Both the position numbers and the translations under genes were made by a program. From NCBI RefSeq assembly GCF_011386835.1, contig NC_088815.1:13516001-13580000 (forward strand): a DNA stretch of 64,000 bases, in the 5' to 3' direction. Numbering within the stretch: position 1 is the first letter of the stretch; each line of letters opens with the position of its first letter. Positions 826-63,739 of this stretch are shown piece after piece. The notes beneath the pieces were generated by a model. It was not told the DNA's origin and ran no database searches. It saw nothing but the letters and a program-made list of their open reading frames with translations. This stretch comes from Chrysemys picta bellii. Its lineage: Eukaryota.

Positions 826-1719
826 CCCCTGAAGGGCGACGTCACACAGCCAGAGCCCCATCACTCTGCACCGAGGGATGAGCCAGGATGTAGCCTTCAA
901 AGAGAAATCCCTTCCCTGGCCTGTCTGCCACTTTCCAGCCCCCGCCACGCGCCCAGGAAATCCCGTGCTCCAGCCTCAGGGGCTGGCTGGTCCCCGCAGG
1001 CCCATTAGTGTGTGTGGGCTGGACAGCTCCAGTGATTTACCGTCGGGGACACAGCGTCCTGGTGGATCAGCCCTGATGCTTCTTGACAAGGTGGAATCGC
1101 TTTGCGATGAGGCTCTGGGGGTCCCAGCCCTGGCCCGTTTCATCCATTGATTTTCCACCCTTTGGAGTTAAGCCGCTAAGCGTAGCACCTGGGCCTCGTC
1201 TCCACCTACTTAAGACTCGCTGAGCCAGGCGGGCTGAGTTACGGCCTGTCTCTCAAGCAGCCTTGGCCCCATCCGTCCGGGTTCCTCGCAGAGCTTAGCG
1301 CCGAAATGAAACAGGGGTTTCACCTCCCCTCAACAGGCTCCAGCAGTCGGAGTCCCCGGCTCTTTGCAAGCATCAGTAACTATTGTACAGCCTGGGGAAA
1401 CTGAGGCAGGAACGGTGAGACTGGCAGCGTTAGCTGGCGGCAATGGGATTAGAACCCAGCTGGTCCCGAGCCCCTTGGCTTGCGCTGCACCCCCTGAGCC
1501 AGGCCTACTCACCCTGCTGCCAGGGCTTGCTTCAGCCCCCGGCAGGGCCCGTGCCCAGCGCCGTGCCCGGGGCCCAGCGGCAGGGTGCTCCTGGCACATG
1601 GTCACCGCGCCCCACGGGAAGCCGGATGGAGGGGCGGCGCCCTGGGGCCAGGAGGCTAAAATCCATCACAGGTGGCCTGGTGCTACCAGACAGCCCCGGC
1701 CGCCCCCGCCCCCGGAGGA

Positions 1720-1800
1720 GCCGTTTCCACCAATCCGGCGCCTGAGGAGGTGTCGCTCCGCATTCAAAGTGCCGGCGAGACGCGGTATAAAGCCGAGCGC
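1720..1800 (+). promoter_or_regulatory. CART-like core promoter (CCAAT and TATA, CpG-rich)
   Basis: CCAAT at about 1728 and TATAAAG at 1786-1792, in CpG-dense sequence just upstream of the ATG. Confidence 0.7.
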
Positions 1801-1838
1801 CGGTGGAGCCAAGGGGGTCACGCCGGAGCATCAGGACC

Positions 1839-1961
1839 ATGGCCAGCTCCCGCCTCTGCCGGCTCTGTCTGGGCTACTCGCTGCTCGTCCTGCTGGCCGC
1901 CGGCCAGGAGCCCCTGGGGCCCAGGGCTGCAGACAGCAAAACCCAAGAAGAAAAGGACCTG
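1839..1961 (+). CDS. CARTPT-like: CART-like exon 1 (signal peptide and short pro-segment)
   Basis: ATG at 1839 about 50 nt after the TATA box; hydrophobic core [14 protein letters not shown]; ends EEKDL then donor GTAAGG. Confidence 0.9.
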
Positions 1962-4900
1962 GTAAGGGGGCGAAGGAGCCAAGGGACGGGGGCGGCGTGC
2001 AAGGGGCTGCCCTTCTCCTCAAGGGCGAGGTGGGAGATGGGGCGTGTGGCTCAGGCGCTGAGCTGGGCCTCCGGGGTCGTTTCCCGGCCCTGCCACTGGC
2101 ACCAGGTGCCCTTGGGCAAGTCGCTTAGGCTGAGATTTTTGTCTACGGCCGTGCCCAGCGCCCATTGAAAACCCCTGGCAGCGGGTCCCTTCACCGCCGC
2201 CCCTGGAGGTGTGATTTCCAGCCCACGCAAGTGCTGATCAGGCCAGCCCTGGGGCTAGCTGCCCCGAGCACAACCCTGCCAGGGACTCTAGGTCGATACT
2301 GCTGGTTTTAGCATGCTGGGTCTGTCAGTGCTTGCCTGCGCACCTCTACCCCGGCTGGCAATCACAGCGCCAGCTCAAAGGGTAGATGTACTCTGGTCTC
2401 TTTCCGGCCCCCGTTCAATAGCATGGGCTCAAGTCCTTTGCTGAACCAGGGTAATGCTTGGGTCTGGCAAGGATAAAGTTGATGCTCGGGAGGCACTTGC
2501 ATGCTACTGCGATCGGATCAGATAGCTAGAAAGGGGCTTCCTATGTCCAGGACAAACAGGCTGGCAAGTGTCTAGGGACGTAACAGTGACAACTGGACTC
2601 TCCTCTCTCCCAGACAGAAATCAGTCACGGCTGTTGGTTTGCTAAAGGTTTTTCCGATGAAAACCAGGCACTTTCTTTAAAAAGCGGATTGGTTTTTATT
2701 GCACTGATTTGTAGCCGTTGTTTGGTTAAAACCAACATGAAACAAATAGTAAATATGCCATTATAGTTAGATTAAAACACACACAGCCTCCTGGTACAGA
2801 CGGTAGCATAAAGACAATGAATGGATCCCACTGCTTTAGTGTCACTTTCATTTCTTGACCCTGGATGCAAATGTATTAGAGTGGGTGATTTTTCTGGAGC
2901 TAGTGTTTTAAACTTTTTAACTAGACTTTCAGTGCTCGAGGCGGGCTATTGGCAAAAGAAATATGGCTCAGGGCTCTGAATTTCTGAGCTTTCATGCTGT
3001 TTATTTGGTCTCCGTTTTTAAAGTTTGTCAGCAAATGGCTGTTCTAGTGCATGTAACGCTCCTTTTGTGCCACATTTTATCCAGGGTCTCAATACCAACA
3101 GGCCGTAGAGCTTCAAGGAGTTAAGGTAACAAGAGTTGATAGGGCCAGAAAGATACAAAGATACCTTCTCCCAGCCTGAGAGAGATCTACAGAGATCCCT
3201 GCTGCTCCTGGTAATAGAATGGGAAATAATACTTCAAGAGGCACTTAAATACTGCAGTAATAGGGACCATCAATACTGAGCGAGAGGGAGAGTATTTACT
3301 GTGTTGTCATAGCAGCTGGAATCCTGAACTCAGGTCAGGGCGCATTGTGCCAGGCGCTGCACAGATGCGCAGTGAGAACAGTCCTTGCTTTAAAGAGTTC
3401 CTGGTCTAAGCAGCCAAGGCCGAGAACAGGGAGGTGAAAACAAGAGGCATCACCCCCCTTTTACAAAGGCAGGCCCAGCTTTGGAAAGGTGCAGACAGGG
3501 ACACGTGGGATTTTCAAAATCACCTATAGCTGCATCCTCCGTCTGGGCCTTGCCACGCCGCTTGCCCAAGGTTGCAGATACATGAGCTGCCCAGCAGGTG
3601 TTTAAGGGGTAGCAGAGGGTGGCAGATGGAACTGAGCGAGCGAACACCCTCTCTCCGTAACAGACCCCAGCACCCAGTCCGATTACACGCCCTCCAGCGT
3701 CCTCCTTCGCGGAGTGATGGCTAAAATCCTAAGCAACAGGAAAACACCAGTGCAGCTGCAGAATAAACATGCCTCCCTGCTGGGACGGGGGGTTTGAGGC
3801 TAAAGCACCAGGAGAACGCAGGAAGCACCAGTCCTGGTTTGTTGGTGCCACTGGCTGCTCCAGTCACCCAAACGACCCCCTAGAGATACTGATTCAGGGG
3901 CTTTGAAAGTCAAGTGGTTGGGCTTGTGGCTAAGGCGCAGGGCTGGCACTTTGGGGTCAGTTCCTTGGGGGAGTCACTGAATCGCTCGGAGTGCAATAAT
4001 TCTGCCTTGCAGTGTGTATACTCTTTGGGGCGGGGACCATCTCTCGCTCAGGGTACAGCTATACTGCCAGTAAAATGTGATTACAGCGCAGGGCGGCACA
4101 CCCGGACTAGCCTTGATCCAGCTAGCATGGGTCACAACAGGAGGGTAGCCGGGGCAGCTAGACTACAGACCCAGGCTCGCTGGTGGGCTTGTACTCTGGT
4201 TCCCAGCCCATGCCGCCATGTCCACACTCCCGCTGTTACCAGCATGAGCTAGATTTAAGCTGGCGCAGATAGGCCAAGCCGTGCTGTCCGGACAGATGTT
4301 CCCTGCGTGTCTGGGCAGCCCCAGGCGGGGTGAAGCTTTCCAGCCCACTTCAGTCACCTAAGACCCACTGACAATTCTTAGCACCCTAGCTCCATCGCTC
4401 AGGGTCGTGAGAAATTCACACCCAAGAGGACCTTCCCCCACCTCGACACTGCTAGGGGGGTGGGCGAATTCTTCCATCGACCAGGCTACTGCGGCTCGGG
4501 CAGGTGGAAGGGAAACCCTGCAGTGCTGGCAGGAGATGAGGACCCTGGCGCCCGCCCCACTCGCTCTCTCTCGCCCGCAGATTGACGCTCTCCAAGAGGT
4601 GCTGGAGAAACTGAAGACGGAGCGGCTGCCCTCCATAGAGAAGAAGCTGGGCTCAGTGGCCTCGGTAAGGAGCCTTTATTTCGGGCCCTCGCAGCTCGCT
4701 CCGCCCATGTCTGGCTCAGGGCTGAGGCTTTAACGAAGCCCTGGGGGTAAACGTGACCTGGCCGCTTTGCCCTGGGGAGGTGGTGAGTAAATCTCCCTGC
4801 AGCTGCGAGTGCCACCTCGGCACAGCCCCTGCCAGATTGCTGCGCCCAGCTCCCACGCGGGAGCCTGAATGAAGACGCCAAATCTTCTGTAGTGCCCAAC

Positions 4901-5667
4901 CCCCAGCAGCCCCTATGGCGAGCAATGGAGACATCCCGTGTGCCCCTGCCAGTGAGAGAAGGGGGGGGGGCTCCCCTAGCCCTGCGTCCCCCCGCCAGTA
5001 TGAGCAATGGGGGCTCTCCCAGCCCCCATGTTTGCCTCCTTGAATGATACGATGAACCCCCCCATTCTGCCCTGCCAGCGGTTACGCAGGCAGGTCTCCC
5101 AAGCTCTGGAAGCAGGCCAGCCATCTCCCAGCTCTCTGCAAACACAGTCCACCGTCCAGAAGGCCCCCCCATTCTTAAAGGGACAACACCCAGTAACCAA
5201 AATGCAAACAATGCAACATCCAACGTGGCTCCTGAGACAAGGTTTTGCCATATAAACTCCCTGTTTGGCCGCCGTAGATTTGTAGTTTCTCAGGCCAGCA
5301 GGGGCCATGGTGATCCTCTAGTCTCACAGATCCGGTTACTCCAAGGGCCTGACACGACAGTCGCAGCTGCGGTGTTGCTGGGAGTTGAGCGTGAGCTCTC
5401 GGGGGTGGCAGCCGTGTCCCATGCATATTTGCAGCTCTCTATAAGCCCTGAGAGAACGGATCAGTGCCTGGGAATGAGCTGTGGGCCAGGCGGGCGGCAG
5501 CTTTGAGCCAGGGGCATCCGCCCGGCTGTTCCAACCCGCGTGGCCCTTCTCTCCCCTAGTGCGATGCCGGAGAGCCGTGTGCCGTGAGGAAAGGAGCCCG
5601 GATCGGGAGACTCTGCAGCTGCCCCCGCGGGACGGCCTGCAACTTCTACATCCTCAAGTGCTTGTGA
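1839..5667 (+). CDS. CARTPT-like: CART (cocaine- and amphetamine-regulated transcript) prepropeptide paralogue; join(1839..1961,4581..4664,5560..5667), 104 aa
   Basis: Three phase-0 GT-AG exons give [41 protein letters not shown] / [28 protein letters not shown] / [35 protein letters not shown]. It has a signal peptide, an 84-nt middle exon and the 6-Cys CART domain. The family is certain; orthology to CARTPT itself is doubtful. Confidence 0.95.
4090..4270. mobile_element. Degenerate palindromic MITE (Harbinger-like turtle family)
   Basis: Internal inverted arms ctagccttgatccagctagcatg and agcatgagctagatttaagctgg; related to the copy at 19861-20095. Confidence 0.5.
4581..4664 (+). CDS. CARTPT-like: CART-like exon 2
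   Basis: Acceptor ctctctctcgcccgcAG; [28 protein letters not shown]; donor GTAAGG. Confidence 0.95.
5560..5667 (+). CDS. CARTPT-like: CART-like exon 3 (six-cysteine CART domain)
   Basis: Acceptor cccttctctcccctAG; [35 protein letters not shown], then TGA at 5665-5667. Confidence 0.97.
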
Positions 5668-6779
5668 GGAGGACAGGACAGGGCGGGGGGACGGGGGCCT
5701 GTGGAGCAGCTTCTGGTCCTAATCTCTCCACCTTGCCTGTTTGGCAGCTGGCAGGAGGTGGGGTTGGTTTTTCTCCTGTGCTCATCACTTCCCCCACGGC
5801 CCTGAAGGCTCCCTCCCCATCCGAGTGCCTGCGATGGAAGGAGCTCTTTGTGCAAAGTGCGCCATTGCTTTGCTCCCATGCTGCCCTGAGGGATGCTAGG
5901 AGAAGCCAGCCTGGCCTGCTTTTCCACGGTGCCAAGCCGCTGATCTCAGTGGGGCCAGCAGCTCTGAGAATCAGCTCCCATGTCCCTTCTCCCCGCTTTC
6001 CCTGCCTGGAGATCTGGGGACAACGGTTCTCTGCTCAGTGCAGAGGGAGAGGCTGCTGGCTGCAGCCTCTCGTGTCTCTGCTTGGTCCCTGGCTGTGGGT
6101 AGAGTAGCCTGGGGGTTGCTCTAACATGGCCCCGAGGTACCAGCTGCCAGCACGCTGCTCTCTAGCCCCATCTCACCCTGCCGTGGCTCCTGCACAAGAG
6201 GCCATGAGGAGGCTAGCATAGGAGCCAGCCACAGAGACTTCAGTGCCTCCTGGGAATCTCTCATGCCAGGGGAAGGGAAGCAGGTGGACGAGCTTTGCTC
6301 CCAGGGGCTGGCAGCTGAGGCCTGGTCTCCGAGTTCTCGGTTATCTGAGCACCAGGGGCATCCCTGCAGTGCCAGTAGGGGTGGCTTTGGATTATCTCTC
6401 CCGGGGAGGAAGGAGCAGCAGGAAGAGGGGACCTGAGCAAACTATGCCACATGCAAACACCGGAGATGAGCAGAACATCCCCCCAGCCAATCATTCTCCC
6501 TGCTCCCTAGCGCCAGTTCCCTGGCTGCTGCATGGAACCTGCTTCCCCTGACACTGGGCAAAGAGCCAGGCTGTGCAGAATGGCAGGGGAGGGGAGGGGA
6601 GGGGAGGGGAGGGAGTGCTGGAGGCAATAGGTACTGAGAGGAAGGCTAGCCTGGGGGGTTAAGGCACAGGGCTGGGATCCAGGTTCAAGCCCCTGTTCTG
6701 CTATGGACTCCTGGTGTGACCGGGGCAACCTCACGGGCCGCTAACATGGATAATAATGCTTCCTTGGCCCATCGTGTCT

Positions 6780-6885
6780 GTTTAGACTGTGAGCTCCCCG
6801 GGGCAGGGACCATCTCTGACTCTGTGTTTGTGCAGCACCCGGACAACAGGGCCCCCATCGCAGCTGGGACCTCTGGGCATAGAGA
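6780..6885 (+). mobile_element. L2 LINE 3' tail fragment
   Basis: ttagactgtgagctccccggggcagggacc...tgtgtttgtgcagcacc resembles the L2 tail; reverse-strand relatives at about 3340-3400, 21850-21910 and 53810-53905. Confidence 0.6.
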
Positions 6886-9800
6886 ATCAGACTTGGTTCC
6901 AGATAATCTTCTAGCATTCCCCACAGACAGCAGTCCCCGTGGGGGGGGGATTTTCTCTTGTTTCCAGATCGTATCGGCTTTAGCCCATCCCTGCAATTCA
7001 AACGGTCACCGGGAAATAACCAGAGACCAAGGCAGACCACAGCAGCAGCCTGCACCCACGGAGATACAGGGGGTGTTTGCACGGTCTGTGCTCTCAGCTG
7101 GTAGCAGCAGCAAAGAAACCTGCCCCCCGAGATACAGCATGAAGTGTGCACATTGACCACCCCTTGCAGTGAGCATCAGAGCTCCCCGTGCTGGAGCAGG
7201 AGGGCAGCTCGAGCTGCTGGTGCAACAGGAAAATGGTCACATTGAAGGCCCTGATTCTCCAGGTGTTTATTAGCTCCGGTGCCAGATGGGTACGAGAAAT
7301 GTTCCCGAAGCAGCCTGGTAAAACAGCTGCTGTGCACTTTGCCTAGTTGTGCAAATGGCTGAACAAGGGGCAGGCCCAGGGAGGAGCAGCCCCCGGTGGG
7401 CAGGGAGCGTAAAGGAGATGGGAAAAAAATAGTGACATGGGCCCTTGTAGGGGTCGGTTTCTTTCAAAAGCTGCATCTGCCCTGAAATCCCACCCCTGTC
7501 CCGATTCATTTCCCAGAACACATTCAGCCTGTGGTGAGCCCACACAGTCATGGACGAGGGTGCTAACGCCAGGCCCCTATTAAATGATTTGTACTCAACC
7601 CTGTGGCTCACGCCTGCTCTTTTCAGCGATGCGCCGTTTCCACTTCCCTGCCTGCCAGCATCCCAGGGGACCCTCATCCTGCTCTGAAGGTTTCCCAGAA
7701 CTCCCAGGCCTGCTCAATGCAGAGTTTGTCCCTGTGAAACAGCATCAGTTTGGGAAAACCGACAGTTCTAGCAGAGACCAGGTGGGGCCAACGCAGCATA
7801 CAACATACAGGACCAGCCCCACTTCCACCCTGGGGGGTTGGACTGGTGGCTACCAAGCAGGACAGCGTGTATTTAGACCAGCCCCAGGGGTGCCTCTTTG
7901 CATCAGCGCTGGAGGCACCGTGAGGAGCTTTGCAGAGGTGTGGGCCCACGGTACCTAAATGCCCCTTGAAAGCATCTGTTGAGTTCTTCCTGGGTCAGCT
8001 GGTGTTTACGGCAGCACCTACGGGGACTGCTCAGGACCAGGGCAAACCCAGCCCATGGAGAGGTTCCAAGTGACCCCCGCAGGATGGGGAGGGTCTAGCC
8101 CCATCAGTACATGACTGTGTCCCCAGTCAGACTGGCCACACGCTGGGAAACACAGTTAGAGAAACAAGGAGCTTGTCAGAGCCTTGCCTGGGAGGAGAGT
8201 GTGGGTAACAAACGGTGCAGGTGCAACCTGCCCCTCCCAGCTCCCCCCCTCCGGCAGGGCTCACTTCCCTCCACAGAGCCAGCCCCTGACTTGCTACACA
8301 GCCTAGCCCTGGTCCAACGGCCCCTTCCATTGAATGCCCCCACCCAGGCAATTAGCAGATCAGTGAGTCACCTGAGACACACACCAGGCTCCCACCCAGT
8401 AACCACACGCTCAGCAGAGGTGTGGTGAAGCTGGAAGGGTGATAGCCGGCCCTCCCTGCTGGCGTCACTGCAGCCAGGCTCCCGGCCAAGGCCATCACTG
8501 CGTGGAGAGGCTGCTTCCCGCCTGGCCAGGGCGAGTGGCCCCTAGCTCAGAGCTGCCACCAGCCCAGGTGGCTTTGGCTGAGTGCAGGCCCTGGCAGTAT
8601 ATGAGCAGCACCCCCAAGGAGCCGGCACAGACCCGCTCTGCTCAGGGGCTAGGCACCAGCTGGCCTGAGCAGGAAATGCTAATGATCCTCTCCCCCCAGG
8701 CACTCTGCAACTTGTTAGAGATCCCTGCCCTCACCAGCTCCATTCCCTCCATAATGGAATAGACCCTGCAAATACCAGATGCACATGGTCAGTGCACTGC
8801 TCCAGCTCTAGAATATTAGAGGGGGAGAGAACTTCCCTTCTCCCGAGGCCACAGCCTCACGTCTGAGCCCAGAATCAAGGTCAGCAAAGGGAATTCAAAC
8901 GCTCCTGCAGCAGTGTCACCCCAGGCTTCAGTCTTCTCTGGGAGCAGCCACTTCTGGCCACGTTCTCCTCCCTCTGCAGCCCAGGCCCTGCTGTCTGTCA
9001 TGCCACCAGAGGACCCAGCACACCCCACAGCTGACCTAATGCACCCAGGGGGAAGAAACTGAAACCCGCTGTTTTGCCATGCAGGCCAGTTGCTGCAATT
9101 CTCTGTCACATGCCAGAGAGCAGCTGGGTGCGTTAGCCAGGCCAGGAGGCAGAGTCCCACCACAGGCCTGCTGGAAACCCCACAGCCTGAGGGAAGGGGC
9201 TGGGCTGAGAGACTAGGTCACACTGGTCCTAAGAGTCTCACGAGGCAGAGCAGCTGGAGCCCTTTCCCCACCAGCATGTGGCCCTTGGAGTGGACAGACC
9301 CCTGCCCAGCCAGTGCTTTGGTTCCCCCAGTAACAGCGTTACCAGTGAGCCTCTGCTGCCCTCACCCATGTTAATTAGCACCTGTAAGGCTCAACCTGCC
9401 CCAGGTAGCAGGTGTGCCAGAGAAGCCACCACTTACCTGCCCCTTAGCTTGCAGGGAGGGGCAGCAGAGGCCAGTCTGGCCCTGCCCCACCTGTTTATTC
9501 CAGGCCAAGTGGGATATTTACCCTAGGCCAGGTCACTTGAGCAACTTCACTCTGACTGACAAGCCTGGGCCTGGAGTAACTAAGGGGAATGGCTTCCCCC
9601 TTTGAAAGGAGGATACAAGAGACACTCCCCACTTGAGCTACAGAACAGGGTGTAGCCTTGAACCAGCCCAAAGAGACTCCCTCTTGGGGACCTGGTCCCC
9701 CTCCTCTCAGCACCCAGCAGCAGAGTGCCTGGGTGCCCTTGCTGAAGGAGGAACTGTGGGAGTTGCTTGGTGCCATGGTGGATGATGGGTTACAGCGGAA

Positions 9801-10990: not shown

Positions 10991-11145
10991 TTAAGCACGT
11001 GTGGTCCCATTGGCACGTCCTCGCCTGCCCCAGAGCTTCCTCAGGCCCAGAGCCACCAGGACAGCAACTGCAACAGCGGCAACAGCCCCCGCCAGTGGCA
11101 CCAGCACCTCTCCCCACTCCACCGGGGGCCTGAGTCCATGGGAAC
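10991..11145 (-). CDS. ZP4: ZP4-like exon 12 (TM helix and tail)
   Basis: [51 protein letters not shown], then TAA. Confidence 0.88.
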
Positions 11146-14100
11146 CTGTGGAGGGAGGGGCTGGTTAGGAGCCAGGACACAGCTGGTCACTGCCAGATCC
11201 TGCCCTAGTCCTCCCCACTGCCCTGCAGCAGCCTCCCCCCCCCCTGCAGTTCCTAGGCCTGCCAAGGCTTGGCAGAGCTCAGCCACCCCTCCACTGAAGG
11301 AGGTGCACTGCTTTGAGTCCAAGGGGCTCCCTCAGACTGATACACCTGCCCCCCCCCCCCCCCCCCGAGATTGACTGGCTGGTAGGGAGCCACTGAAGCA
11401 TTAAGCAGCTTTATGCTAGGCCCTGATGGGAAGCAAGGGGCTCCTCACATCTCTGGCCTCATTGTGCCACCAGCAGCCTGGGGGCTGTTCTGTGTCCCCT
11501 CCCCTGGCTCAGCAGCCCGGCCACCACTGGAGGGAGGGACAAGCCCCTCCTTATACTATGCCCATTGCCCCTCACCCTCCTCCAGGAGAGGGGACCTGGG
11601 AGGTTCTGAGCTGGCCATTCCCAGAGTACCCAGCCCCCCAGTTTAATACTGAACACCTGCCTGGTGAGGTAGGTGGATGCTATGGTCCCATTCCACCCCT
11701 AGGAACCATTCCCTCCACCCCCCAGGGCCTGCTCCATTACCTTCTTCCTGGACAAGGTCTTCCTCCACTTCCTGGCCAGCACGGAAGTCCACAGGCCCGT
11801 CAGCGGTCACCAGGCTCAGGGGCTCCTCCCGCCATGCTTGGCTCTGGGAGTCTCTTCTTGCTGAAAGAGTAAAGTGGTGTCAAGACAGTTCTCTTCCCAG
11901 TCCCTGAAGAACTGACCCCCCGCCCAGGGCTTTGCAGACAAGGCCTATGGGGCAGCAGCCCAGTTCCAGCCCCCATGGGAAAGTCCTGAGAAAGTGAAGA
12001 TGTCACTTCAGAGGTGCTCAGGGTCACAGTTGGGGCAGAGGAGGCTCCACAGAAGTGGTCGTTGTGCACCCAGGAAGGGGAGATCCATGGTCTCCCTTCA
12101 AGCCCCTTGGCTAGTGCCTGGGTGTCTTGCCAGAGGCCTATGGCCAGTCTAAGTGTGTGTGTGTGTGTGTGGGGGGGGGTGTCTTAGAGGTCCCCTGAAG
12201 GGGTAGCTTGCAGGAGGCCTGACAAGACAGCTTCAATCTAGCAAGAGCCATGACTGCTTGTAGCCAAGCCTTCATGGCCTGTCTTAACCCAGCACCCCAG
12301 ATACACGGATCTGAAGGCCCAGCAGTCTGCTAAGGGAAGGGGTGAAGGGGACAGAATGGGAAAGGCCCAAGTGTTTGGCTCTCAACAGGCCTGAGAGGTC
12401 CAAGAGGCAGATGCCAAGAAGGAACAGACTTACTCCTCCCCTGTAGGCTCGTGGGGCATTGGACTACACAGCGTTCCAGCCCAGAGGGCATGCAGGCAGA
12501 GGCACTGCAGTGGAAATATACCTGGAAGCAGAGAGAATTCATGCTTGGCAAGGATGGATTAAGGGGGGGGGGGGGGATCTGCATCAGAGGGTCACTGGCC
12601 TCCCTCCACCCTAAGAACTTCCAGCTCATGACAGCCACAGGAGAGACATCCAGCCAGCTACAGTAATGGGATTCTTTGCCTCCTGCAGAGCTCTTCAGAG
12701 CAGAAACTTTTGTCATGCAGTTGCACAAAGCATGGGGCTTTGCAGCGAAGGCCAGGAGACTGGCCTGCAGGGTCATGATCGGCTCCAGACCCTGGATGGG
12801 GTCGGCTTTAGGCCAGGCAAGCCAGTGCTGGTCACACTAGGCTAAATTAAGATCTTCTGTCCACTCAGGTGCTCCCCACCCAGCTGCCAGGAGAGGGGCA
12901 GGCAGCAAGATAGCTTCAGGTCAGTCTCTGCTCCATTTGCGGGAGGATCCCTGACCCACCGGCTTGGCCAGGGCAAGTCCCAGGACTAATCCCTTCCCGG
13001 GAGTGGGACCATACCGGGCCTGAGAGCGCTCGCTGGGAGGTGGCGTCCACAAAGGTGAAAGTGCTGACAATGAAGCGCTGATGGTGAGATGGGAACTGCA
13101 GCCCTGAGGCCTCGCTCACAGGTACCAGCTGGGTCTGGTAGTTGTCACCTTCATAAGGGCACCTGGAAGGGCACAAGCAGGGATGGGTTGAGGCTTCTCA
13201 CTTGGCAGTCACTGCCCTGCTCCCATCCCTGCCCACTCACTCACCCATCCACAAGGATCGGCCAGTCTGGCTGCTGCAGGGGGTTGGTGCTCGGGGTGGC
13301 CCAGCACTGGTGCAGGACTAGAGCCAGGCTCGGGTCTGTTCTCTGGAGGATACGGACCTCCACATGCACAGGGTCCCGGAGAAACTTCACCACTGGGTAC
13401 TCACGGTCTGCGTAGTAGGTGCTGTAATACTCATCTGCAGCAAGAATGAAGTGAGATGACCACGTCCTGCAGTGACCGGATCACTGATTTCATGGAGGGC
13501 TTGGCAGGGCAAGTGCTGGGGCAGAATCACCCACTTCCCCTGGTTCCTATTCTCCTCCTGGTGACCAGATCCCACTGGTATTGGTCAAGTGTCTGAACCA
13601 TGCCCTGGGGCCTAGCTGGGACACTGGGAGGCAGACCAGGAAAGTCATCTCCCTGAAGGGAGAGAGACCAGTGCAGCTGTGCCAAGAGACCATCCAGGCT
13701 GGCTTGGCCAGGACCTAGATTTCCTTCCCTCCCAGTGGGTACAGGAGCTCTGGGAGCAGAGCCACCCCCACCATCCAGGCAGGTGGGTCTCTGCCACCCC
13801 CCAAGGAGCAGTGATCCAAGTGGGCCAGACACTTAAATGTTTCAACAGCCTCTCAAGTGCTTGGCAGGCCTACATGCAGTCACCTGTAGCAAGCCTCATC
13901 TCCAAGGCTAGGGGTCCCTGCCCAACCGCAGGGGGCGGTGGAGGAAGGGTGGAGACCACGACATTCACAGGGAGGAAGTCCTCAGCCGAGTAGCTGCAGC
14001 GGATGGTCAGCCTGGGTGGGGAAAGAAGCTAGACAGCTGGTCCCCTCTGGACTCTCCCAGAGAGCACGCTCAGATGACAGGCTGAGACCTTGTCATCAGT

Positions 14101-17100
14101 GAGTGGTTAGTGCCTGCCCCCCTCCCTTTAATTGCAGGGGATCAGGTGGCCTCCCCCAGCAGGATGAGATCCAGGCAGGGAGCTCAGCAGTGGGTTGAGC
14201 ATGCCAGTGCACATCCCCTAGCCCTCCCTGGGAGGGGAGGTTCCCCCTAGGCAGGGGACCCAAACTCTGCTTGGCTGACAAGGGACCCCACCCTTTCCAG
14301 CAGAGGCCTCCAAGCTTTGCCAGGCCTGTTACCTGAAGGTGCTGTCCCGAGTGATGGAGCCAGAACGGGAGGTGAGCACTTGGCGGTCTGCTACCAGCTC
14401 ATTCTCATACACCCGCTGGTCTCCAGATGCCTGCAAAGGGAGGAGGAGAAGAGAGGCTGGACACACAAGAAAGGCCTTCCCATGGGAGAGCTTCTCAGAG
14501 CTGCTGAGTTCTTGTGCAAGGGAGAATTCACATGTGGGAGCCAGCTCAAACCTCCACAGCCAACAGGTCCAAGATCTAATGGCCCAGGCTGTGCCCCCCA
14601 CTACCCTTCTTTTGCAGGAGAAAAGTCTTGAGGGGATGTGACTGGAGCCAGTCTGCATAGTAGAGGCCCAGCCCAACTTCGCTCATGTTCTCAAGTTGAC
14701 CAGAAACTTGTCAATATACTAGGCCCTCCCCCTGACCTAGAATCTCAGGTGGCATTCCAGGACTAGTACACCCCAGTGTTCACATGCCACTAGACCACCA
14801 GCTACACCAAACAGGCTGTTTTCATGGCCAGCACAGCTTCCAGAGACACTAAGCTCATTCCATGTAGGGACCCAGACAGAGCAATGGGCACCATGTCCCC
14901 TCTTTTCCTGCCCATAGGTCCCTTTGCCTCAAGGCGATTTGGCCTTTCCATGAACCACTTTCACAAGCATTAGCAGCTGCTAGGGAGCAGGGTCTGTAGG
15001 CTGCTTGTGTTTCATCACAGCTCCGCATTAGCGGAGCTTGTAGGGCCCAAACCTTGGGAGACCACCTGTAAGCAGAGGCTGTAGGCTCAGAACCCCAGGC
15101 TGCAAGGGGCAAGTCTAATAGTCTCAGGACATATCAGATACAGCCTCATGGTGACTGTTAGCGACACTCTCCCCCGACCCATAACCTCAAGGACAATCAG
15201 GTGGCATCAGAGAGTGATGAGTTCAGGAAGTGCCTTGCCCAGCAGAGGGAGGACTGACTGGTGCCCTCCTTTACCTGGACAGTGGTCCCGCAGGCCGAGA
15301 GTGGGAAGCGATACACAACAAAGGCTTCATTCCTAGACACCGGGGCACATCTGCTGCCATGAGCGCTGACCAGGTGCACTGAGCTCAGGTCCAGGGGTGG
15401 CACGGTCACATCCCTTGAGATCGCAACTGAGAACTGGCCATCTGGGGTGCACTGCGCAGTCACTGGGGAAGAGCCATGCAGCATCTCAGCAGGGAGCGGC
15501 AGCCTCTGCTGGAGCCATTTGCCTGGGGACCCCTGCCCACCCCCACCGTGAAGCAGGAGCCTCTAGACAGGGGAGAAGACCAGCTAGAACTAGTCCTGCC
15601 CCCTGACAGTCACTGGGATGAGAGTGACAGGACAGGCCTGGGCTCAAAGGGGCAGACTCCATCACTGGGTCCTAAAGCCCACCCAGGCCCTGGTCCCCAA
15701 GCCCCAACTGGTTTCTTCCTCCCAGACACCCTCCAGAATCTGCTACAGAGATGCCCCAAGGCTCCCTGCGGCAGAGGAAAGCCTTTGCTCACCCTTGTCT
15801 CCATAGTAGCAGGGAGTCAGCCTGTCACCGGGCTGGTAGCAGCAGCCCAGCTCTTCACAGTCGCCTTGTGTGGTGGGTGGGGCAGCACACGGCAGCCGAG
15901 CTGAGGCCTGGACGGCAGAGCACACGCTAGGGCTCGGGGCATCCCGGGCTAGGGAGAGGGGCAAAGATGGGTGCTTGCTCAGACAGCCCTCCCTGTTATT
16001 CACCCTAAAGGGAGGACCAGGAAACAGCATCTCCCATGGCCGAGTCCCTCCTCAGGGAGGTGTCTAACTCCTGGCAGCTGGTACAGCAAGCCCAGAGACA
16101 AGGTGTGACTGTTCTTAATGTTTCCTCTGAATACTGTGTGGGTGCCTCAGTTTCCCCTATGCATTTTGTAAGTCTCCAGCGTGCATACATGGCTGACATG
16201 GTCTCCTGGCAACTAATGGCTGGGGCCCTTCCCCCCTGCAAGGGGATAGCTAAAGGTGAACCAAGATCAGGTGACATCCCAGCCCAGGAAAGCCACAAAA
16301 CCCAGAGAGGAGGGGCTGGGGAGTTTCAGTTTGTGCAGAGGGGGTTATCTGGCTCACTGCCCCCCAAAATGGACCCAGCTGAGGGGTCCCCTTCTCTGTA
16401 CCTACAAGCTCTGTTTTAGACCATGTTCCTGTCATTTAATAAGCCTCTGTTTTACTGGCTGGCTAAGAATCACATCTGACTGCAAAGTGGGGGTGCAGGA
16501 CCCCCTGGCTTCCCCAGAGCCCCACCTGGGCAGACTCGCTGGGGGAAGCGCACGGAGGGGCATATGCTGAATGCTCCCAGGAGAGACCCAGGAGCTGAAG
16601 CCATGTGAGCTTCTTGCCCTGAAGACAGTCTGCTCCGAGGGAGAGGAGGCTCCCCAAAGTCCTGACTGGCTTTGTGGGGAGCAGTTCCAGAGCATTGCCC
16701 AGGGACTCCATGACACAAGGCCTCCAGCTACACCAAGCAGCATCCTTCAGGAAGATCCTAGAGACAGTGCAGTCCCATCCCTGGCCCCAGAGCCCCTTAC
16801 CTAGAAGGTGGTTTGGGCACCTCAGCTCCTCCTTGTAGGAAGCCACAGGGCCTTCAATCTGGACTGTCATCACAAAGCTGCCATCCTAGGCGGGAAGCAG
16901 AGGATACACCACAGTGATGGTTCAAGCCACCCAGAGTCTCTCCCCAGCACCATGTGCTCAAGGAGAGCCAGGGGGCACGAATGATTTAAGGGGGACAGCA
17001 GGATTCACAACCACCCCCAGCCCATGCCCTGGGTGGGCCCATGGACCCATGAGTCAGTCCCACCAGGGGACAAGCAGGCAGCTGGGAGTCCTGGAGAGCA

Positions 17101-19226
17101 AAGATCACCCTCCCCCCAGCCTTGATACTCTGCCTTCGGTGCCATGTTCTCCCCTTGAAGAGCCAGTGGCATTAGCCAATGTCACAGACCCTAGCCCTAG
17201 TTGGCCTGGATGGATTGAGCATCTCAGGGGCAGAACAGACAAGAAACCAAGATTTGACTTTCACTCCCTGACCTAGCAGCTAGGCCAGATCACTCCCCGC
17301 ACAGGCAGGCCCTGAGCCACAGGCTAACCAAGGGACAGAGCCAGCTTTACTGGGAGAGAAGAAACGAGGTGGAGGATTTCAGGCCTCCCCACACAGACTG
17401 GGGTCATCCTCCTCCCTGCATTGCTGCGGCCAAACTCTCCCTCTGCGCGGTGGACTCCACCCTCTGAGCTGGGCCAGCAGAGCAACCGATGGCCAGAGCA
17501 GCAGATCGAGGGGGCCAGACAAGTCAGCTGCAGTGACATCACTCTGAAGCAATGAGATCACTAGCTCCAGGGACAGAAGCCAGGTCAGTGCAAGTGTTTC
17601 CAAGGCAGGGGTGGGGAAAGGAGTAGAGCGAACACATGTCGAGTCCTCCCCGGCTAGTAATGCTGCATGTTCGCAGCGCTGGTCAGCCTAGGCTCTCAGG
17701 ACGCGGTGCAGACAGTGGCCGTGCCTCAGCCTTCCTGAAGCTCCGGAGCAGGCTTGGACACATGGAAACTGAGGCACAGATGTGAAGAGACTTGCCCCCC
17801 ATGGGAAGTTAGTGGCAGGGGCAGGATTAGAACTCAGGTCTCCTGACTCCCAGCTCCATGCACTAATGGCTAAATGCAGACAGATCCAAGCATGGTCCCC
17901 TCACACCCCCTTCATAAGCACTGCTACCCATCCCATTCACACCGAGGGGGTCCCAGACAGGGCCTTACTCTCTCGTTGACATAACACCCAGTGTAGAACG
18001 CCTCGACCACCACGGAGCCATTGGCGTGCTGCTCGACACGCGTCCCGCAGGCAGGGTTGCTCTGCAGAGCCTGGGGCCTGCCCTCTGCATCTGGAGGCCA
18101 AGAGGGGCAACAGATGAAGCACCATCAGCCCTGTTCCTCCTAGTCCCAGAGCTACTGCCTCCCCCATTGCCAGACCCGGAGCAGGGAGGCGCTGCAGAGG
18201 AGTCCCGCTGTCGGTCACGCCAGCCTGGAGGGGCCACTGACCCCTCCCTTCCACCACAGACATTTGAAGCGTGGCCAGTTAAGGTCAGCAGTGGTGATGG
18301 AGTAGGAACCTTCCTTACAGGGTACAGACTGTTCAGAGACAGGCCAGTGCCATGGACCAGCCCACATGGTTTAGGGCTGGTTTCACTCCATTTCCTCCCC
18401 TTTAGCCTCACAAAGGCCACCCCCCCCCCCTCTTTGCACCACCTCAGCAGCTTGGCATTTCTCTGCTGTATTTGGGGTTAGTTCTCCCCCTACAGCTGTA
18501 ACTGAGGTATAACCTTAGCCAAGTCATTCAGCATCCAGTGCACCTCACCCCAGAGCCAGGTCTCCAGCAGAGACAGGGGATGGGTCACCAGATGATTCCC
18601 TGTTCTGTTCATTCCCTCTGGGGCACCTGGCACTGGCCGCTGTCAGAAGACAGGATACTGGGCTAGATGGACCTTTGGGCTGACCCTGTATAGCTTATGT
18701 TCACATGCATTACTGGATTAGTTAGTACACCAGCAATCAGGGGAGAGGGGGGGAGTTGACCCACTTCAGACAACTTGCCAGTTTCTGCCAAGTAACAGGG
18801 CCAATGGCTCCCAAGGTATTCCCTGGTCTAGCACCTTTTATCTGAGGAGCTCAAAGCTTTGGGGACAGTCAATATGCATTGACTTTGTACCCTCATTGGA
18901 GGCAAGCAGACAAGACCCAACACCCCAGGAAGTTACTTATAGTCAGAGACCCCACAGCACCTCCTCAGCTTTACCTGCTAGGGGATACTGCCTCCCAAAA
19001 TCCCAGCAACACCTTAGAGAGACCAAAGAAGTTTCACTTTGCTCAACTTACCCAGAGCTCTCAGCACAAGGGGAGCCACCTCAGTCTGGTTTGGGAGCAG
19101 GCTGAAGACCAAGCTTCTCTGCCCACAGGTCAGCCAGCTAATATCCCAAAGAGCCCCCCCATTCCTAAAGCCACCCTGAGCCCCCCCACTCAGAAAAAAT
19201 AGGCTAAAAAAGAGCCAAAACATCAT
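10991..19226 (-). CDS. ZP4: Zona pellucida glycoprotein 4-like (ZPB class); complement(join(10991..11145,11741..11860,12434..12521,13015..13162,13245..13434,13884..14011,14333..14430,15275..15462,15793..15948,16801..16885,17969..18090,19052..19226)), 550 aa
   Basis: Twelve GT-AG exons with consistent phases sum to 1653 nt with no internal stop. Domain order: signal peptide, ZP-N1 (4 Cys), trefoil (6 Cys), ZP-N ([14 protein letters not shown]), ZP-C (LHQCWATPS; [13 protein letters not shown]; FPSHHQRF), furin site RTRR, EHP-like [11 protein letters not shown] helix, basic tail. Motifs such as LLARDAP and RLPC match human ZP4 as recalled. Confidence 0.93.
11741..11860 (-). CDS. ZP4: ZP4-like exon 11 (furin site and EHP)
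   Basis: [40 protein letters not shown]; completes RTRR across the splice junction. Confidence 0.85.
12434..12521 (-). CDS. ZP4: ZP4-like exon 10
   Basis: [29 protein letters not shown], then donor GTAAGT. Confidence 0.92.
13015..13162 (-). CDS. ZP4: ZP4-like exon 9
   Basis: [49 protein letters not shown], then donor GTATGG. Confidence 0.95.
13245..13434 (-). CDS. ZP4: ZP4-like exon 8
   Basis: [64 protein letters not shown], then donor GTGAGT. Confidence 0.95.
13884..14011 (-). CDS. ZP4: ZP4-like exon 7
   Basis: [42 protein letters not shown], then donor GTGACT. Confidence 0.93.
14333..14430 (-). CDS. ZP4: ZP4-like exon 6
   Basis: [33 protein letters not shown], then donor GTAACA. Confidence 0.95.
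15275..15462 (-). CDS. ZP4: ZP4-like exon 5
   Basis: [31 protein letters not shown]...[16 protein letters not shown], then donor GTAAAG. Confidence 0.95.
15793..15948 (-). CDS. ZP4: ZP4-like exon 4 (trefoil domain)
   Basis: [52 protein letters not shown]; six Cys; donor GTGAGC. Confidence 0.93.
16104..16715 (+). mobile_element. Solo LTR (612 bp) in ZP4-like intron 3
   Basis: Begins TGTGAC and ends TGACA, flanked by an identical 5-bp target-site duplication CAAGG (16099-16103 and 16716-16720); internal degenerate poly(A) signal at about 16437. Confidence 0.85.
16801..16885 (-). CDS. ZP4: ZP4-like exon 3
   Basis: [28 protein letters not shown], then donor GTAAGG. Confidence 0.88.
17760..17870 (+). 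mobile_element. MIR/CORE-SINE fragment (one of many)
   Basis: ggaaactgaggcacag...ggattagaactcaggtctcctgactccc. Similar fragments at about 1395-1470, 20985-21060, 21930-22050, 29100-29250, 35310-35420, 36110-36260, 54030-54250, 58520-58620, 61370-61500, 62350-62510 and 63155-63440. Confidence 0.75.
17969..18090 (-). CDS. ZP4: ZP4-like exon 2
   Basis: (D)[40 protein letters not shown], then donor GTAAGG. Confidence 0.9.
18575..18700 (+). mobile_element. CR1 LINE 3' tail fragment
   Basis: gatgattccctgttctgttcattccctctggggcacc...gggctagatggacctttgggctgacc; nearly identical to 28930-29027. Confidence 0.85.
19052..19226 (-). CDS. ZP4: ZP4-like exon 1
   Basis: [18 protein letters not shown]...[27 protein letters not shown], then donor GTAAGT in phase 1. 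Confidence 0.85.
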
Positions 19227-25399: not shown

Positions 25400-25830
25400 C
25401 CCGCCCAGCCGGTCTCCCCTTCGTGCCCCCTGATTGGCCGGCGATGACATCAGCGGGGCGGGGTGTTCGCCGCGGTGACGTAAAAGCGGGAAGGGGCGGG
25501 GCCAGCCACCGCACGTCGTGCTGGAGCCCGAGCCGGAAGATGGCGGCGGCGGGAGCCGCCGAGCGCGCGAGCCGGGGGGAGGCGCCGCCCCGCGAGCCCG
25601 CCGGGCCCCGCCGCTACTCGCTGCTGGTGATCGTGGGCGGCGGCTGCCACCGGCCCGGCCTGCTGGGCGCCGTGCTGGCCGCGCTGGAGAGAGGTGAGCA
25701 GGGCCCCGCCCGCGCAGCGCCGTGCACACCCCCCCCCCCGCCGGGCCCGTGCAGCGCCGTGCACCCCTCGGCCGAGTGCCGCTGCAGCCCCGGGCAGCAC
25801 GGGCCGAGGCGCTGCGGGCCCCATTCATCG
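25400..25830 (+). promoter_or_regulatory. MAP1S CpG-island promoter
   Basis: Very CpG-dense. Reverse CCAAT (gattgg) at about 25433, TGACATCA 25445-25452, GC box GGGGCGGGG 25455-25463, CRE-like TGACGTAA 25476-25483 and a YY1 motif AAGATGGCGGC over the ATG. Confidence 0.8.
25540..25693 (+). CDS. MAP1S: MAP1S exon 1
   Basis: aagATGgcg context; [51 protein letters not shown], then donor GTGAGC. Confidence 0.9.
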
Positions 25831-31800: not shown

Positions 31801-34800
31801 CTCTGCTCAGCCCTGGAGGGCAGGCCTAGCACGGGAGCTGTGGCTTCTAGTCACTTTATCCCCCCCTCCCTCGCTTGCAGAAGTGATGGCAACTGCGTCG
31901 TATTGCCCAGTGTGCGTCTGCATTACCCCTTCCCCTCCCCGTGCGGCGGTGGTGGGGGGTGTGTCTCTGCCCGCACTGTGGGGCCGTTCTAATGCATGCG
32001 CTGTAACCTGGGCCTCCGGTCTGTCCCCGAGCCTTGGCTGTGAGCGGCTCGCATGACCCTGAGGATTTACGGTGCAGGGTCACATGCTCCTCCCTACGGT
32101 CCACTTTGTGCATTCCCTGTTACTTGCAATGAGGGGCAGCGACCCCTGGGTGAGCTCCCATCCCTGCTGCTCGGGCTGCTAGCTGGCAGGCGTCAGGCTT
32201 CTCTCCGGCCGGGGCTGGGCACAGCGTGCGCTGCTGACGGAGGCTGTCGCAGGGGCCTGCGGTTGCTCTTCTGCCTGACGCGGATTGTTCCGCGAGGCCG
32301 TGCCGTGCCAGGGATTAAAGAGCCTGGGATGGGAGCTTGGTTCCCCCGACTTACCTGGCTGGTAACTGATCCTCCCCCCACAGGCAGGAGCAGACCCCCC
32401 ACTAGGTGGCTCCCTGCTGACCCATCCCCTCCCAGTGTATTCCTCACCTGGGGCGGTTCTGCTGGTCCCGGTTTCCCTTCCCTGGCTGGTCCTGGCCTTG
32501 CAGCCGCCTGGGCAAAGGGGGCCCTCGAGGGGACTGCTCCGGGGGCTTCGCTGTCCGTGCTGCTGGAGAGGAATCTGCCCTGCCAGCCAGGCACGTCCGC
32601 TCCCTCTCCCCTGGAGCCAGGTTCGTGCAGGGTCCCTGGTGCTTGCATTCCCCAGGGGTGAAGCCCTCGGAGCAGACCGATTGCTCACCCCTGTGCCAAG
32701 GCAGCCAAAGGGAGGCAGAAGCCACTGAGGAGGAAGTTGCTTGCCCAGCCGGGGGAAGGGAGGCTGGCGTCACTGCCAAGGTCAGCCCTGGGAATCCCTG
32801 CGGTGGCTGGTCTCTGTGAGCCTGGTGCCTCTCCTGGCAGGGGCAGGGCAGGGTGGGCTCTGCACCCCTTTGAAAGCTGCGGGTGCTGATTGTTCTCTCC
32901 CCAGGAATCCGCTGCTGGGACATCGACCTCACCTCCTGCAACCTGGACGAGCAGCTGAAGCTGTTTGTGTCCCGGCACTCGGCCACCTTCTCCAGCATCG
33001 TGAAAGGTAAGGGCCATCTGCCAGGCCTCTCCCGTCTCCACCTGCCCAGCTGTGCATCCCCTAGTCCTCTGCTGGTGTGGGCTTGGCACCGCGCTGGAGA
33101 TGGCTCCCTGCCTGCACAATGCAGCTTTCTGGCCCGGAATTCCCAGGGACTGTCCTGTCCCCGCACTCTGGGACACCCCGGGCTCCCCCCGGAGTATTTA
33201 AAGGAGCTCTCCAGGCTGCTTGGCCCAGAACTCGCCCTGCTCTGGGGGGAATCTATTGCAAGTCCAACTGATTGTCTGAACGTTGCTGGAGTGAGGCAGC
33301 AGCTCGGTGCCGAGCTGGCCCTGCTGTGGGAGGGGGAGGGGAGGAGGTTTCACAAACAGCCCCCCTGCTGTGGAAGCAGCATTGGGAATAACCTGTCTGG
33401 GGTACTCCAGTGCCCCCCAGTACCGCAGTATCTGAGCATCCCCCCCCGACTGCTCTCTGTGAGGCTGGGGGTGCATAGGACTAGTCCCCTTTGCTCAGGT
33501 TTTGGGGGGGGGGGGTTGTATGCCACTCAGATCCATGCTGTCTGCCCTTGACAAAGTGCTGGCTACGCCCACCAGGAGCAGATGGCAACGTGCGCCCTGA
33601 CACATCCAGCGGCAGAAGCAGCATCTGGGAGCTCGTGTTCTGCTCTGCATCGGCAGAAACCTCGCGTGACCCCCTCCACGCATGCCCCTCCTGGCTCTTA
33701 GCAGTGTTTAATTCGTGTTGCAATCCGTACCTCAGCCCAGACTGCAGGGGAAAGCCAGGCCGCCCAGTGAGTTGGAAATAGACAGGGAGGCAGCACCGTC
33801 CTGCTGTGTGCGGAGGGGTCGCTCCGGGGGCTGCCGGTCAGCTGCAGACCCGGACCTTGCCCTCTCCTGATGGAGTTTTGCTGGGTTGGGCAAACATTTA
33901 GCCAGGGCTACAAAGCCTGCTTTTATGCAGAGTTGCTTGCACTCTCCCTCAGCTGATGCCTCCGTCCCGGCCCCTCCAAGCAGACAAACGCGCTGATTCT
34001 TCCTGGGGAGCGGCTCTCAGAGGAGTTCCTGGGCCGGCGGCCCTCTCCATGCGCCTTCCCGTGAGGCCTCGTCACGCCCCGGCTGGCTCCTGGCTGCGTT
34101 GCTCCACTGCAGTGTCTAGACTCAGGCCGGCCCTCCCAGACCGAGGGACGGGCTTGTTCTGTCTAACTCGCTCGGAGTGGGACATCTTGACTCCAAGTCA
34201 AAACCATGCTGTAGCCAGATACTCCTTGGCTCATCTTGTGGTGGGGGGAACCGCTGGTTCACCACATCTGTGCCTAGACACAAGTGTTGGTGGTGGGGGG
34301 GTCTCTGCTGCTCCACTGTGTGGGGTTAACCCACTTTGGTACGCCCCCCCCCACCCCCTTCTCTAAGGCTCCAGAGCAGGGGGCTCCTTGCATGAGGGTC
34401 TGAGCTCTCTGTTGCTTGTCAGGTATAGCTGGCTCCTGCAGACCATCCCCTTTCCAGGGGTGCTGAAGAGCTCGGGGACCCCGATGGGTGGAGCAGGACA
34501 TTGGCCTGGCTACGCTTCCTCGTGTAACGCCCGGAGGCTGGCGGAGGGGAAGCCAGGCCTTGTGCTCCAGAGTGGGGAGAAGCTTGGCTGTCTGGGGGTG
34601 CTAGGCGCTGTACAAACAGAGCAGAGCCCCTCCCCCAAGGAGCTTAGAGAGGCCCCTGTGCCGGTAGCATCCCTCCCCTCTGGCACGGGTAGAGCAGAGG
34701 CACTGGTTGGGCTGGGTTCAAACGCTGTCGGCACCAGCTAGTGCTGCTGTTAGGGGTAAAACCCTCCCCCAGCCTCGGATACCAGTGGGTGCCAGAGAGA

Positions 34801-63712: not shown

Positions 63713-63739
63713 ATGTCCTGTTTTGGGGAACATTTCTGG
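63713..63739 (+). CDS. FCHO1: FCHO1 first coding exon (MSCFGEHFW); the gene continues beyond the window
   Basis: Exon 63655-63739 (acceptor tgtgtttgctccAG, donor GTAAGT). ccaagATGtcc encodes MSCFGEHFW, matching the human FCHO1 N-terminus MSYFGEHFW; lies downstream of MAP1S as in human. Confidence 0.9.

Follow-up and report, generated by a model that had tools for sequence, protein, structure and literature searches.

The question raised by this stretch of DNA is what kind of CART gene (CART stands for cocaine- and amphetamine-regulated transcript) a turtle keeps on the same strand as MAP1S and FCHO1: its CARTPT, a recent copy of CARTPT, or a separate paralogue that goes back to the genome duplications of early vertebrates. 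The stretch, called the window below, comprises 64,000 nucleotides of the painted turtle, Chrysemys picta bellii (NCBI RefSeq assembly GCF_011386835.1, contig NC_088815.1, positions 13,516,001 to 13,580,000 of the forward strand), and positions are counted from its first letter. Together, our data speak for the third answer. We consider it very likely that the gene, CART2, is a functional three-exon neuropeptide gene in a conserved block of genes, and that it is the genome-duplication sister of CARTPT, a copy that mammals have lost according to the literature. The finding is already known: the name CART2, and the account of the gene as a copy from the genome duplications that mammals have lost, date from 2015 (Cai et al., 2015; PLoS One, PMC4436185).

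The gene lies on the + strand at positions 1839-5667 and has 104 codons in three exons, with two phase-0 introns that both begin with GT and end with AG (Table 1). Its exon translations tile the 104-residue RefSeq protein XP_005278980.1 at residues 1-41, 42-69 and 70-104 with zero mismatches, and the Chrysemys locus fetched for this protein agrees with the window letter for letter across the gene. By this locus, the window corresponds to about 13.516-13.580 Mb of chromosome record CM062342.1 (assembly GCA_011386835.2), a microchromosome of 17 Mb. Two more accessions carry the same protein sequence, one of the names given being Trachemys scripta elegans. The database protein XP_005278980.1, which the searches returned, stands in for a joined exon model. 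Against the Pfam CART family (PF06373), with a curated cut-off of 27 bits, exon 2 scores 32.1 bits (E = 1.4e-7) and exon 3 scores 68.1 bits (E = 7.8e-19); for the full-length protein the score is 123.8 bits, in a match that covers profile positions 2-70. The initial annotation, made from the letters alone, had described an intact three-exon CART gene at this place and had supposed that it might be annotated as CART-like. The exons, the GT/AG introns, the Pfam matches and the exact tiling of the RefSeq protein bear out the former, and the RefSeq title, "cocaine- and amphetamine-regulated transcript protein-like" from Chrysemys picta bellii, agrees with the latter.

In its cysteines and its exon structure, the gene conforms to its family. 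The cysteine spacing C-x5-C-x11-C-x-C-x5-C-x6-C is present at residues 70-103, and the 35 residues of exon 3 can be aligned ungapped with the human CART domain of known structure (1HY9), in which the six cysteines form three disulfides; 28 of the residues are identical (80%), and all six cysteines correspond. As elsewhere in the CART family, the phase-0 introns precede the I(E/D)ALQ helix and the first cysteine. The N-terminus is hydrophobic as judged by eye, a KK pair is present at residues 62-63, and ER stands in the place of the KR site.

The gene is also spliced as predicted. Contigs of four public runs, whose records are coded and which we only guess to be RNA, were aligned to positions 1700-5900. 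One contig of 793 nucleotides from run X3 joins exons 1, 2 and 3 at 1960|4580 and 4663|5559, both with GT..AG boundaries, and the junction between exons 2 and 3 recurs in runs X1, X3 and X4, which represent three studies and two organism labels. Such GT..AG junctions can hardly be derived from genomic DNA, and they match what is expected of a processed transcript.

To place the gene among CART genes, an exon-3 profile search was combined with a word search using a partial model derived from Ensembl, which together gave about 250 CART-family proteins. The representative search gave many read-through or partial gene calls. The maximum-likelihood tree has 81 rows and 65 columns; left out of it were near-identical teleost and frog sequences, unspliced models and calls without a recognisable exon-2 region. 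The window gene falls into a turtle clade (support 97/91) that is nested in a clade of 37 CART2-type rows (99/95). This larger clade spans fish, amphibians, squamates, crocodilians and birds, and it includes turkey CART2 (113 residues), the 107-residue coelacanth CART, medaka "ch22" and zebrafish "CART1". Sequences of the CART1, KCI and RCY types lie outside it, as does one further clade. Two topologies are rejected by approximately unbiased (AU) tests: one that joins turtle CART2 to turtle CART1 in a clade (p = 0.009), and one that joins it to all CART1-type rows (p = 0.0125). The peptide is thus not found among the CARTPT orthologues, the position that a recent duplication or transposition would have given it.

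The C-terminal signatures tell the same two groups apart. That of the window gene, preceded by EKKLG..S, is the one found in NCBI "CART-like" proteins of turtles, crocodilians, squamates, amphibians, lungfish, coelacanth, gar, bowfin and teleosts, whereas the signature of CARTPT orthologues is CDCPRGTSCNSFLLKCL, preceded by EKK[FY]GQVPM. Where the window gene has NFYILKCL and CSCPRGTAC, CARTPT/CART1 has NSFLLKCL and CDCPRGTSC. What the window gene shares with CARTPT/CART1 (represented by human 1HY9 and by the turtle CART1 of 111 residues) is the Pfam family, the intron positions, the KK site, a cysteine knot with the 28 of 35 identities given above and, if the human map is taken from established knowledge, a MAP1-family gene as chromosomal neighbour. 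It differs in that the KR site, the source of the long CART(55-102), is ER in the window gene, and in that the neighbour is MAP1S instead of MAP1B; by the tree and the AU tests, the two genes belong to separate orthology groups. A putative CART6-type gene, represented by a box-turtle sequence, stands in yet another clade of the tree, apart from the CART2 of the window.

There is little doubt that the window gene is the painted turtle CART2 listed by Cai et al. as XM_005278923, with 104 residues (PMC4436185). These authors cloned chicken CART1 and CART2 and defined CART1 to CART6 by orthology to six coelacanth genes. Their CART2 entries also include green sea turtle (XM_007072062, 104 residues), chicken (cCART2, KC249967) and coelacanth (XM_006002318), and among the CART genes in their table only CART2 has 104 residues. 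We equate XM_005278923 with XP_005278980.1 because the species, this unique length and the clade membership agree. Like their CART2, the window gene has three exons (a number reported for chicken CART1, chicken CART2 and all six coelacanth CART genes), the 104 residues of the two turtle entries, a single KK site and a predicted 41-residue peptide with six cysteines; for chicken CART2, the authors likewise report a single KK site and predict a single product of 41 residues. It also groups with turkey CART2 and the 107-residue coelacanth CART, and we see no difference of substance. Zebrafish "CART1" was renamed CART2b in the same paper, CART2 was not identified in mammals, and the origin of the family was argued to lie in a local duplication and two rounds of genome duplication, on the grounds that CART genes have MAP1A, MAP1B, MAP1S and CRTC paralogues as neighbours (PMC4436185). 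The paralogon identity, which the initial annotation had held to be an open question, had therefore been published in 2015 under the name CART2, together with the absence from mammals and the origin by genome duplication.

As a discovery, the gene carries little weight: RefSeq already has it in dozens of reptiles, birds, amphibians and fishes. What the present analysis adds is confirmation, in the form of exon coordinates, RNA junctions, evidence of purifying selection, an adjacency of CART2 and MAP1S that extends from bowfin to birds, and the pattern in which the first processing site was lost.

The adjacency is not a peculiarity of turtles, as other lineages also have a CART gene beside MAP1S. 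In the red-throated loon (Gavia stellata), MAP1S lies 1 kb downstream of a 107-residue CART gene on the same strand, and in the bowfin Amia ocellicauda, CART is followed by MAP1S at a distance of 3 kb. The annotated "MAP1S" of the owlet-nightjar Aegotheles starts with CART2 sequence and is a fused gene model. Three emydid turtles have the same gene order as the window, whereas no neighbouring gene was recorded within 10 kb at a caecilian locus. Moreover, a CART2-like gene and MAP1S occur on shared scaffolds, that is, scaffolds of identical length, in 13 species including salamanders, caecilians and the coelacanth, and FCHO1 is found on the MAP1S scaffolds of many sauropsids. The presence of the CART2-MAP1S adjacency in birds and bowfin means that the arrangement is older than the split between ray-finned and lobe-finned fishes. 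Genes of the CART2 type are found in bichir, sturgeon, gar, bowfin, teleosts, lungfish, coelacanth and tetrapods, and those of the CART1 type in a shark, a reedfish and tetrapods. These ranges, together with the adjacency in bowfin, place the duplication before the divergence of bony vertebrates.

As a separate observation, "MAP1S" models of three birds are fused to neighbouring genes: that of Aegotheles to CART2, that of Ficedula to FCHO1 and that of Tinamus to an SMN-family gene. These are annotation errors that incidentally document the gene order.

Our model for the origin of the block is as follows. Its order is SMN-like, CART2, a ZP4-like gene on the minus strand, MAP1S and FCHO1. CART2 would be the sister of CARTPT (CART1, which lies beside MAP1B), the two having arisen in the genome duplications of early vertebrates; most non-mammalian vertebrates probably kept CART2, and mammals, according to the literature, lost it. 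The turtle side of the paralogous order reads SMN-like, CART2, MAP1S, FCHO1. For the human side, we rely on established knowledge and on Cai et al. and take SMN1, CARTPT, MAP1B and FCHO2 to be at 5q13.2, and MAP1S and FCHO1 at 19p13.11. The tree, the AU tests and the shared MAP1S adjacency support the proposal of the initial annotation that turtles keep a genome-duplication sister copy of CART. An equally ancient paralogue could also have arisen if the CART-MAP1-FCHO block had been copied by a regional (segmental) duplication rather than with the whole genome. The content of the window alone cannot tell a large segmental duplication from a whole-genome one. Many other gene families are common to human 5q13 and 19p13, which speaks against a segmental origin. 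Cai et al. do invoke an extra local duplication for CART3/4 and CART5/6, but they also place CART genes on several paralogous regions that carry MAP1A, MAP1B or MAP1S and CRTC paralogues (PMC4436185). We therefore regard a segmental origin as improbable, and whole-genome duplication as the better explanation of the two blocks.

If CART2 is processed like CARTPT/CART1 and like chicken CART2, its signal peptide would route the precursor into the secretory pathway, and a prohormone convertase would cut after K62-K63. This cut would free a peptide of 41 residues (64-104) with disulfides C70-C88, C76-C96 and C90-C103. The short form alone would be expected in turtles, because the KR site that yields the mammalian long form is ER. 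At this first dibasic site (E55-R56, window 4617-4622), all turtles have ER, birds have RE or SE, and squamates have SQ or HQ; crocodilians, amphibians, coelacanth, gar and bowfin retain KR. The second site, which is KK or KR, is found in all of them. The pattern suggests that CART2 has lost the long peptide form repeatedly. By our own count, 30 of the 41 residues of the predicted turtle peptide are identical to those of the short form of horse CART1, a closer likeness than the 59% reported for chicken CART2 (PMC4436185). It is conceivable, but not likely, that CART2 acts as a short-form peptide in its own right, distinct and not redundant, through a receptor of its own. Our literature searches found no paper on the function of CART2 in reptiles.

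Chrysemys and Trachemys differ at 1 of 315 coding sites, as against 91 of 3500 intron sites, and in the comparison of Chrysemys with two other emydid assemblies, 1 or 2 of the 315 coding sites differ, as against 2.1-2.6% in introns. Coding exons are thus about eight times less diverged than introns among emydid turtles. The exon differences are silent in both comparisons, since all three species have one identical protein. In all turtle orthologues found, those of pleurodires as well as cryptodires, the reading frame is intact, and neither the six cysteines nor the KK site has been lost. The low exon divergence, the silent nature of the changes and the intact frame, cysteines and KK site make an expressed pseudogene unlikely. 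Such a relic, intact in appearance, without function and heading for loss as in mammals, would be in keeping with the weak expression of chicken CART2, for which Cai et al. doubt a substantial role (PMC4436185), and with the fact that turtles, birds and squamates no longer have the first processing site, KR. A relic would not be expected, however, to retain its open frame, cysteines and KK site in all turtle families sampled, to confine its few exon changes to silent ones and to produce an mRNA that is spliced as predicted, and we consider this explanation very improbable. A working CART2 gene is the far better description of the locus.

Besides the weak expression in chicken, several points weigh against the interpretation of the gene as a functional CART2 of genome-duplication origin. 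The tree rests on 65 columns, and its CART1-type rows form an unresolved grade and not a clade, so that the tree itself does not establish CART1 and CART2 as sisters. That MAP1S is the gene beside CART2 specifically, in the account of Cai et al., combines our reading of their text with our own synteny data. The link between XM_005278923 and XP_005278980.1 is an indirect one. The run type is a guess from coded records. Finally, signal-peptide and convertase cleavage are predicted by analogy, and the evidence for a CART2 peptide is at the level of sequence and RNA contigs. A CARTPT/CART1 copy that was duplicated or transposed recently, in turtles or reptiles, and came to lie beside MAP1S by chance would fit the 80% identity of the mature domain to human CART and the lack of resolution of the CART1-type rows as a clade, but hardly any likelihood is left to it in view of the AU tests against turtle CART2 with CART1 (p = 0.009) and against CART2 within the CART1 set (p = 0.0125), the CART2-type clade (99/95) that reaches from fish to birds, and the MAP1S adjacency in loon and bowfin. 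As far as the tree, these tests and the loon and bowfin adjacency reach, a recent turtle-specific copy of CARTPT is already refuted.

One more gene, beyond those published, may belong to the conserved block. Upstream of the window, some 6.8 kb before CART begins, the + strand carries an SMN-family gene. Turtles and a gharial (Gavialis) have such a gene, of 344-348 residues, a short way upstream of CART2 and on its strand; it has an SMN_Tudor and an SMN_YG-box domain and only a weak match to the Gemin2-binding domain. The "MAP1S" model of a tinamou (Tinamus) contains an SMN Tudor domain. The position of SMN upstream of CART2 in turtles and the gharial, and near MAP1S in the tinamou, mirrors that of human SMN1 near CARTPT-MAP1B. 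SMN may be one more ohnologue pair of the block. Alternatively, should the working SMN gene of sauropsids be in the MAP1S-type block and the mammalian one in the MAP1B-type block, sauropsid SMN would be a different ohnologue from human SMN1, through hidden paralogy. We put this forward as a doubtful possibility. If it were true, the SMN of birds and reptiles would not be a strict orthologue of human SMN1. Literature searches found no paper on the synteny of SMN.

Table 1. Features in and around the CART2 gene of the painted turtle window, in order of position.
Feature	Position in window	Strand	Description and evidence
Promoter-like motifs	1730..1791	+	CCAAT at 1730; TATAAA at 1786, 53 nucleotides before ATG; direct reading and motif scan
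CART2 coding exon 1	1839..1961	+	Residues 1-41; ATG at 1839, hydrophobic signal-peptide-like N-terminus, propeptide start; GT donor at 1962
Intron 1	1962..4580	+	GT..AG, phase 0; skipped in the 793-nucleotide contig of run X3
Alternative exon in intron 1	3347..3486	+	Contig of run X1 joins 3486 to 4579 (GT..AG); single low-depth contig
CART2 coding exon 2	4581..4664	+	Residues 42-69 (28 residues); conserved propeptide helix, ER replacing the first KR site, K62-K63 cleavage site
Intron 2	4665..5559	+	GT..AG, phase 0; skipped in contigs of X1, X3 and X4
CART2 coding exon 3	5560..5667	+	Residues 70-104 (35 residues) and TGA; six-cysteine knot domain
3' untranslated region	5668..7600	+	Transcribed at least to 5881; ATTAAA at 7579; 3' end inferred
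ZP1/ZP4-like gene	10991..19226	-	550 residues; Ig-like, Trefoil, ZP-N and Zona_pellucida domains; between CART and MAP1S; gene calls and Pfam
MAP1S coding exons (7)	25540-25695, 32883-33020, 38605-38691, 39006-39173, 40277-43645, 44483-44725, 45713-45865	+	tblastn of Chrysemys MAP1S
FCHO1 first coding exon	63713..63739	+	MSCFGEHFW, then GTAAGT donor; equals the first nine residues of Gopherus and Chelydra FCHO1

Of the neighbouring genes, MAP1S was correctly placed by the initial annotation on the + strand 3' of CART, as seen from the seven exons found by tblastn and from the large exon, which is 100% identical to MAP1S of Chrysemys picta bellii; all named matches of this exon are MAP1S or MAP1S-type. 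The large open frame at 40286-43678 has a MAP1B-type N-terminal domain and an MBL-like domain (Pfam MBL_MAP1B, E = 1.9e-126). The description of a CART-MAP1S-FCHO1 block with all genes on the + strand holds for order and strand, but FCHO1 contributes only nine codons to the window, and the ZP1/ZP4-like gene on the minus strand had been omitted. No exon beyond this nine-codon first one was found when turtle FCHO1 proteins were compared with the window, the remainder of the gene lying past its end, and tblastn with the FCHO1-like tail of the flycatcher (Ficedula) fusion model found no FCHO1 exon in the window. A Pfam scan of ten long open frames at 46-64 kb found nothing; these frames are chance products of high G+C.

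The intervening ZP4-like gene and the adjacency in three emydid turtles are further additions to the published picture. The gene stands between CART2 and MAP1S in emydid turtles, and in the worm lizard Rhineura it is also located 3' of CART, on the minus strand; it is absent from the 1-kb gap between CART and MAP1S in the loon.

Some minor observations concern the ends of the CART2 transcript. RNA contigs of two runs with different organism labels begin at 1742-1743, about 44 nucleotides upstream of TATAAA. Contig ends do not fix a transcript start, and TATAAA is a putative promoter element. A scan upstream of the gene for a cAMP response element as in the mammalian CARTPT promoter gave a single 7-of-8 match about 1 kb upstream, on which we place no weight. 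A partial model derived from Ensembl/UniRef starts in the same region of intron 1 as the alternative exon, and a transcript with this exon would be without the signal-peptide exon. At the other end, one contig of 1983 nucleotides has about 1.58 kb that are unaligned past 5881, and we take it to extend, without alignment there, some 1.58 kb downstream of that position.

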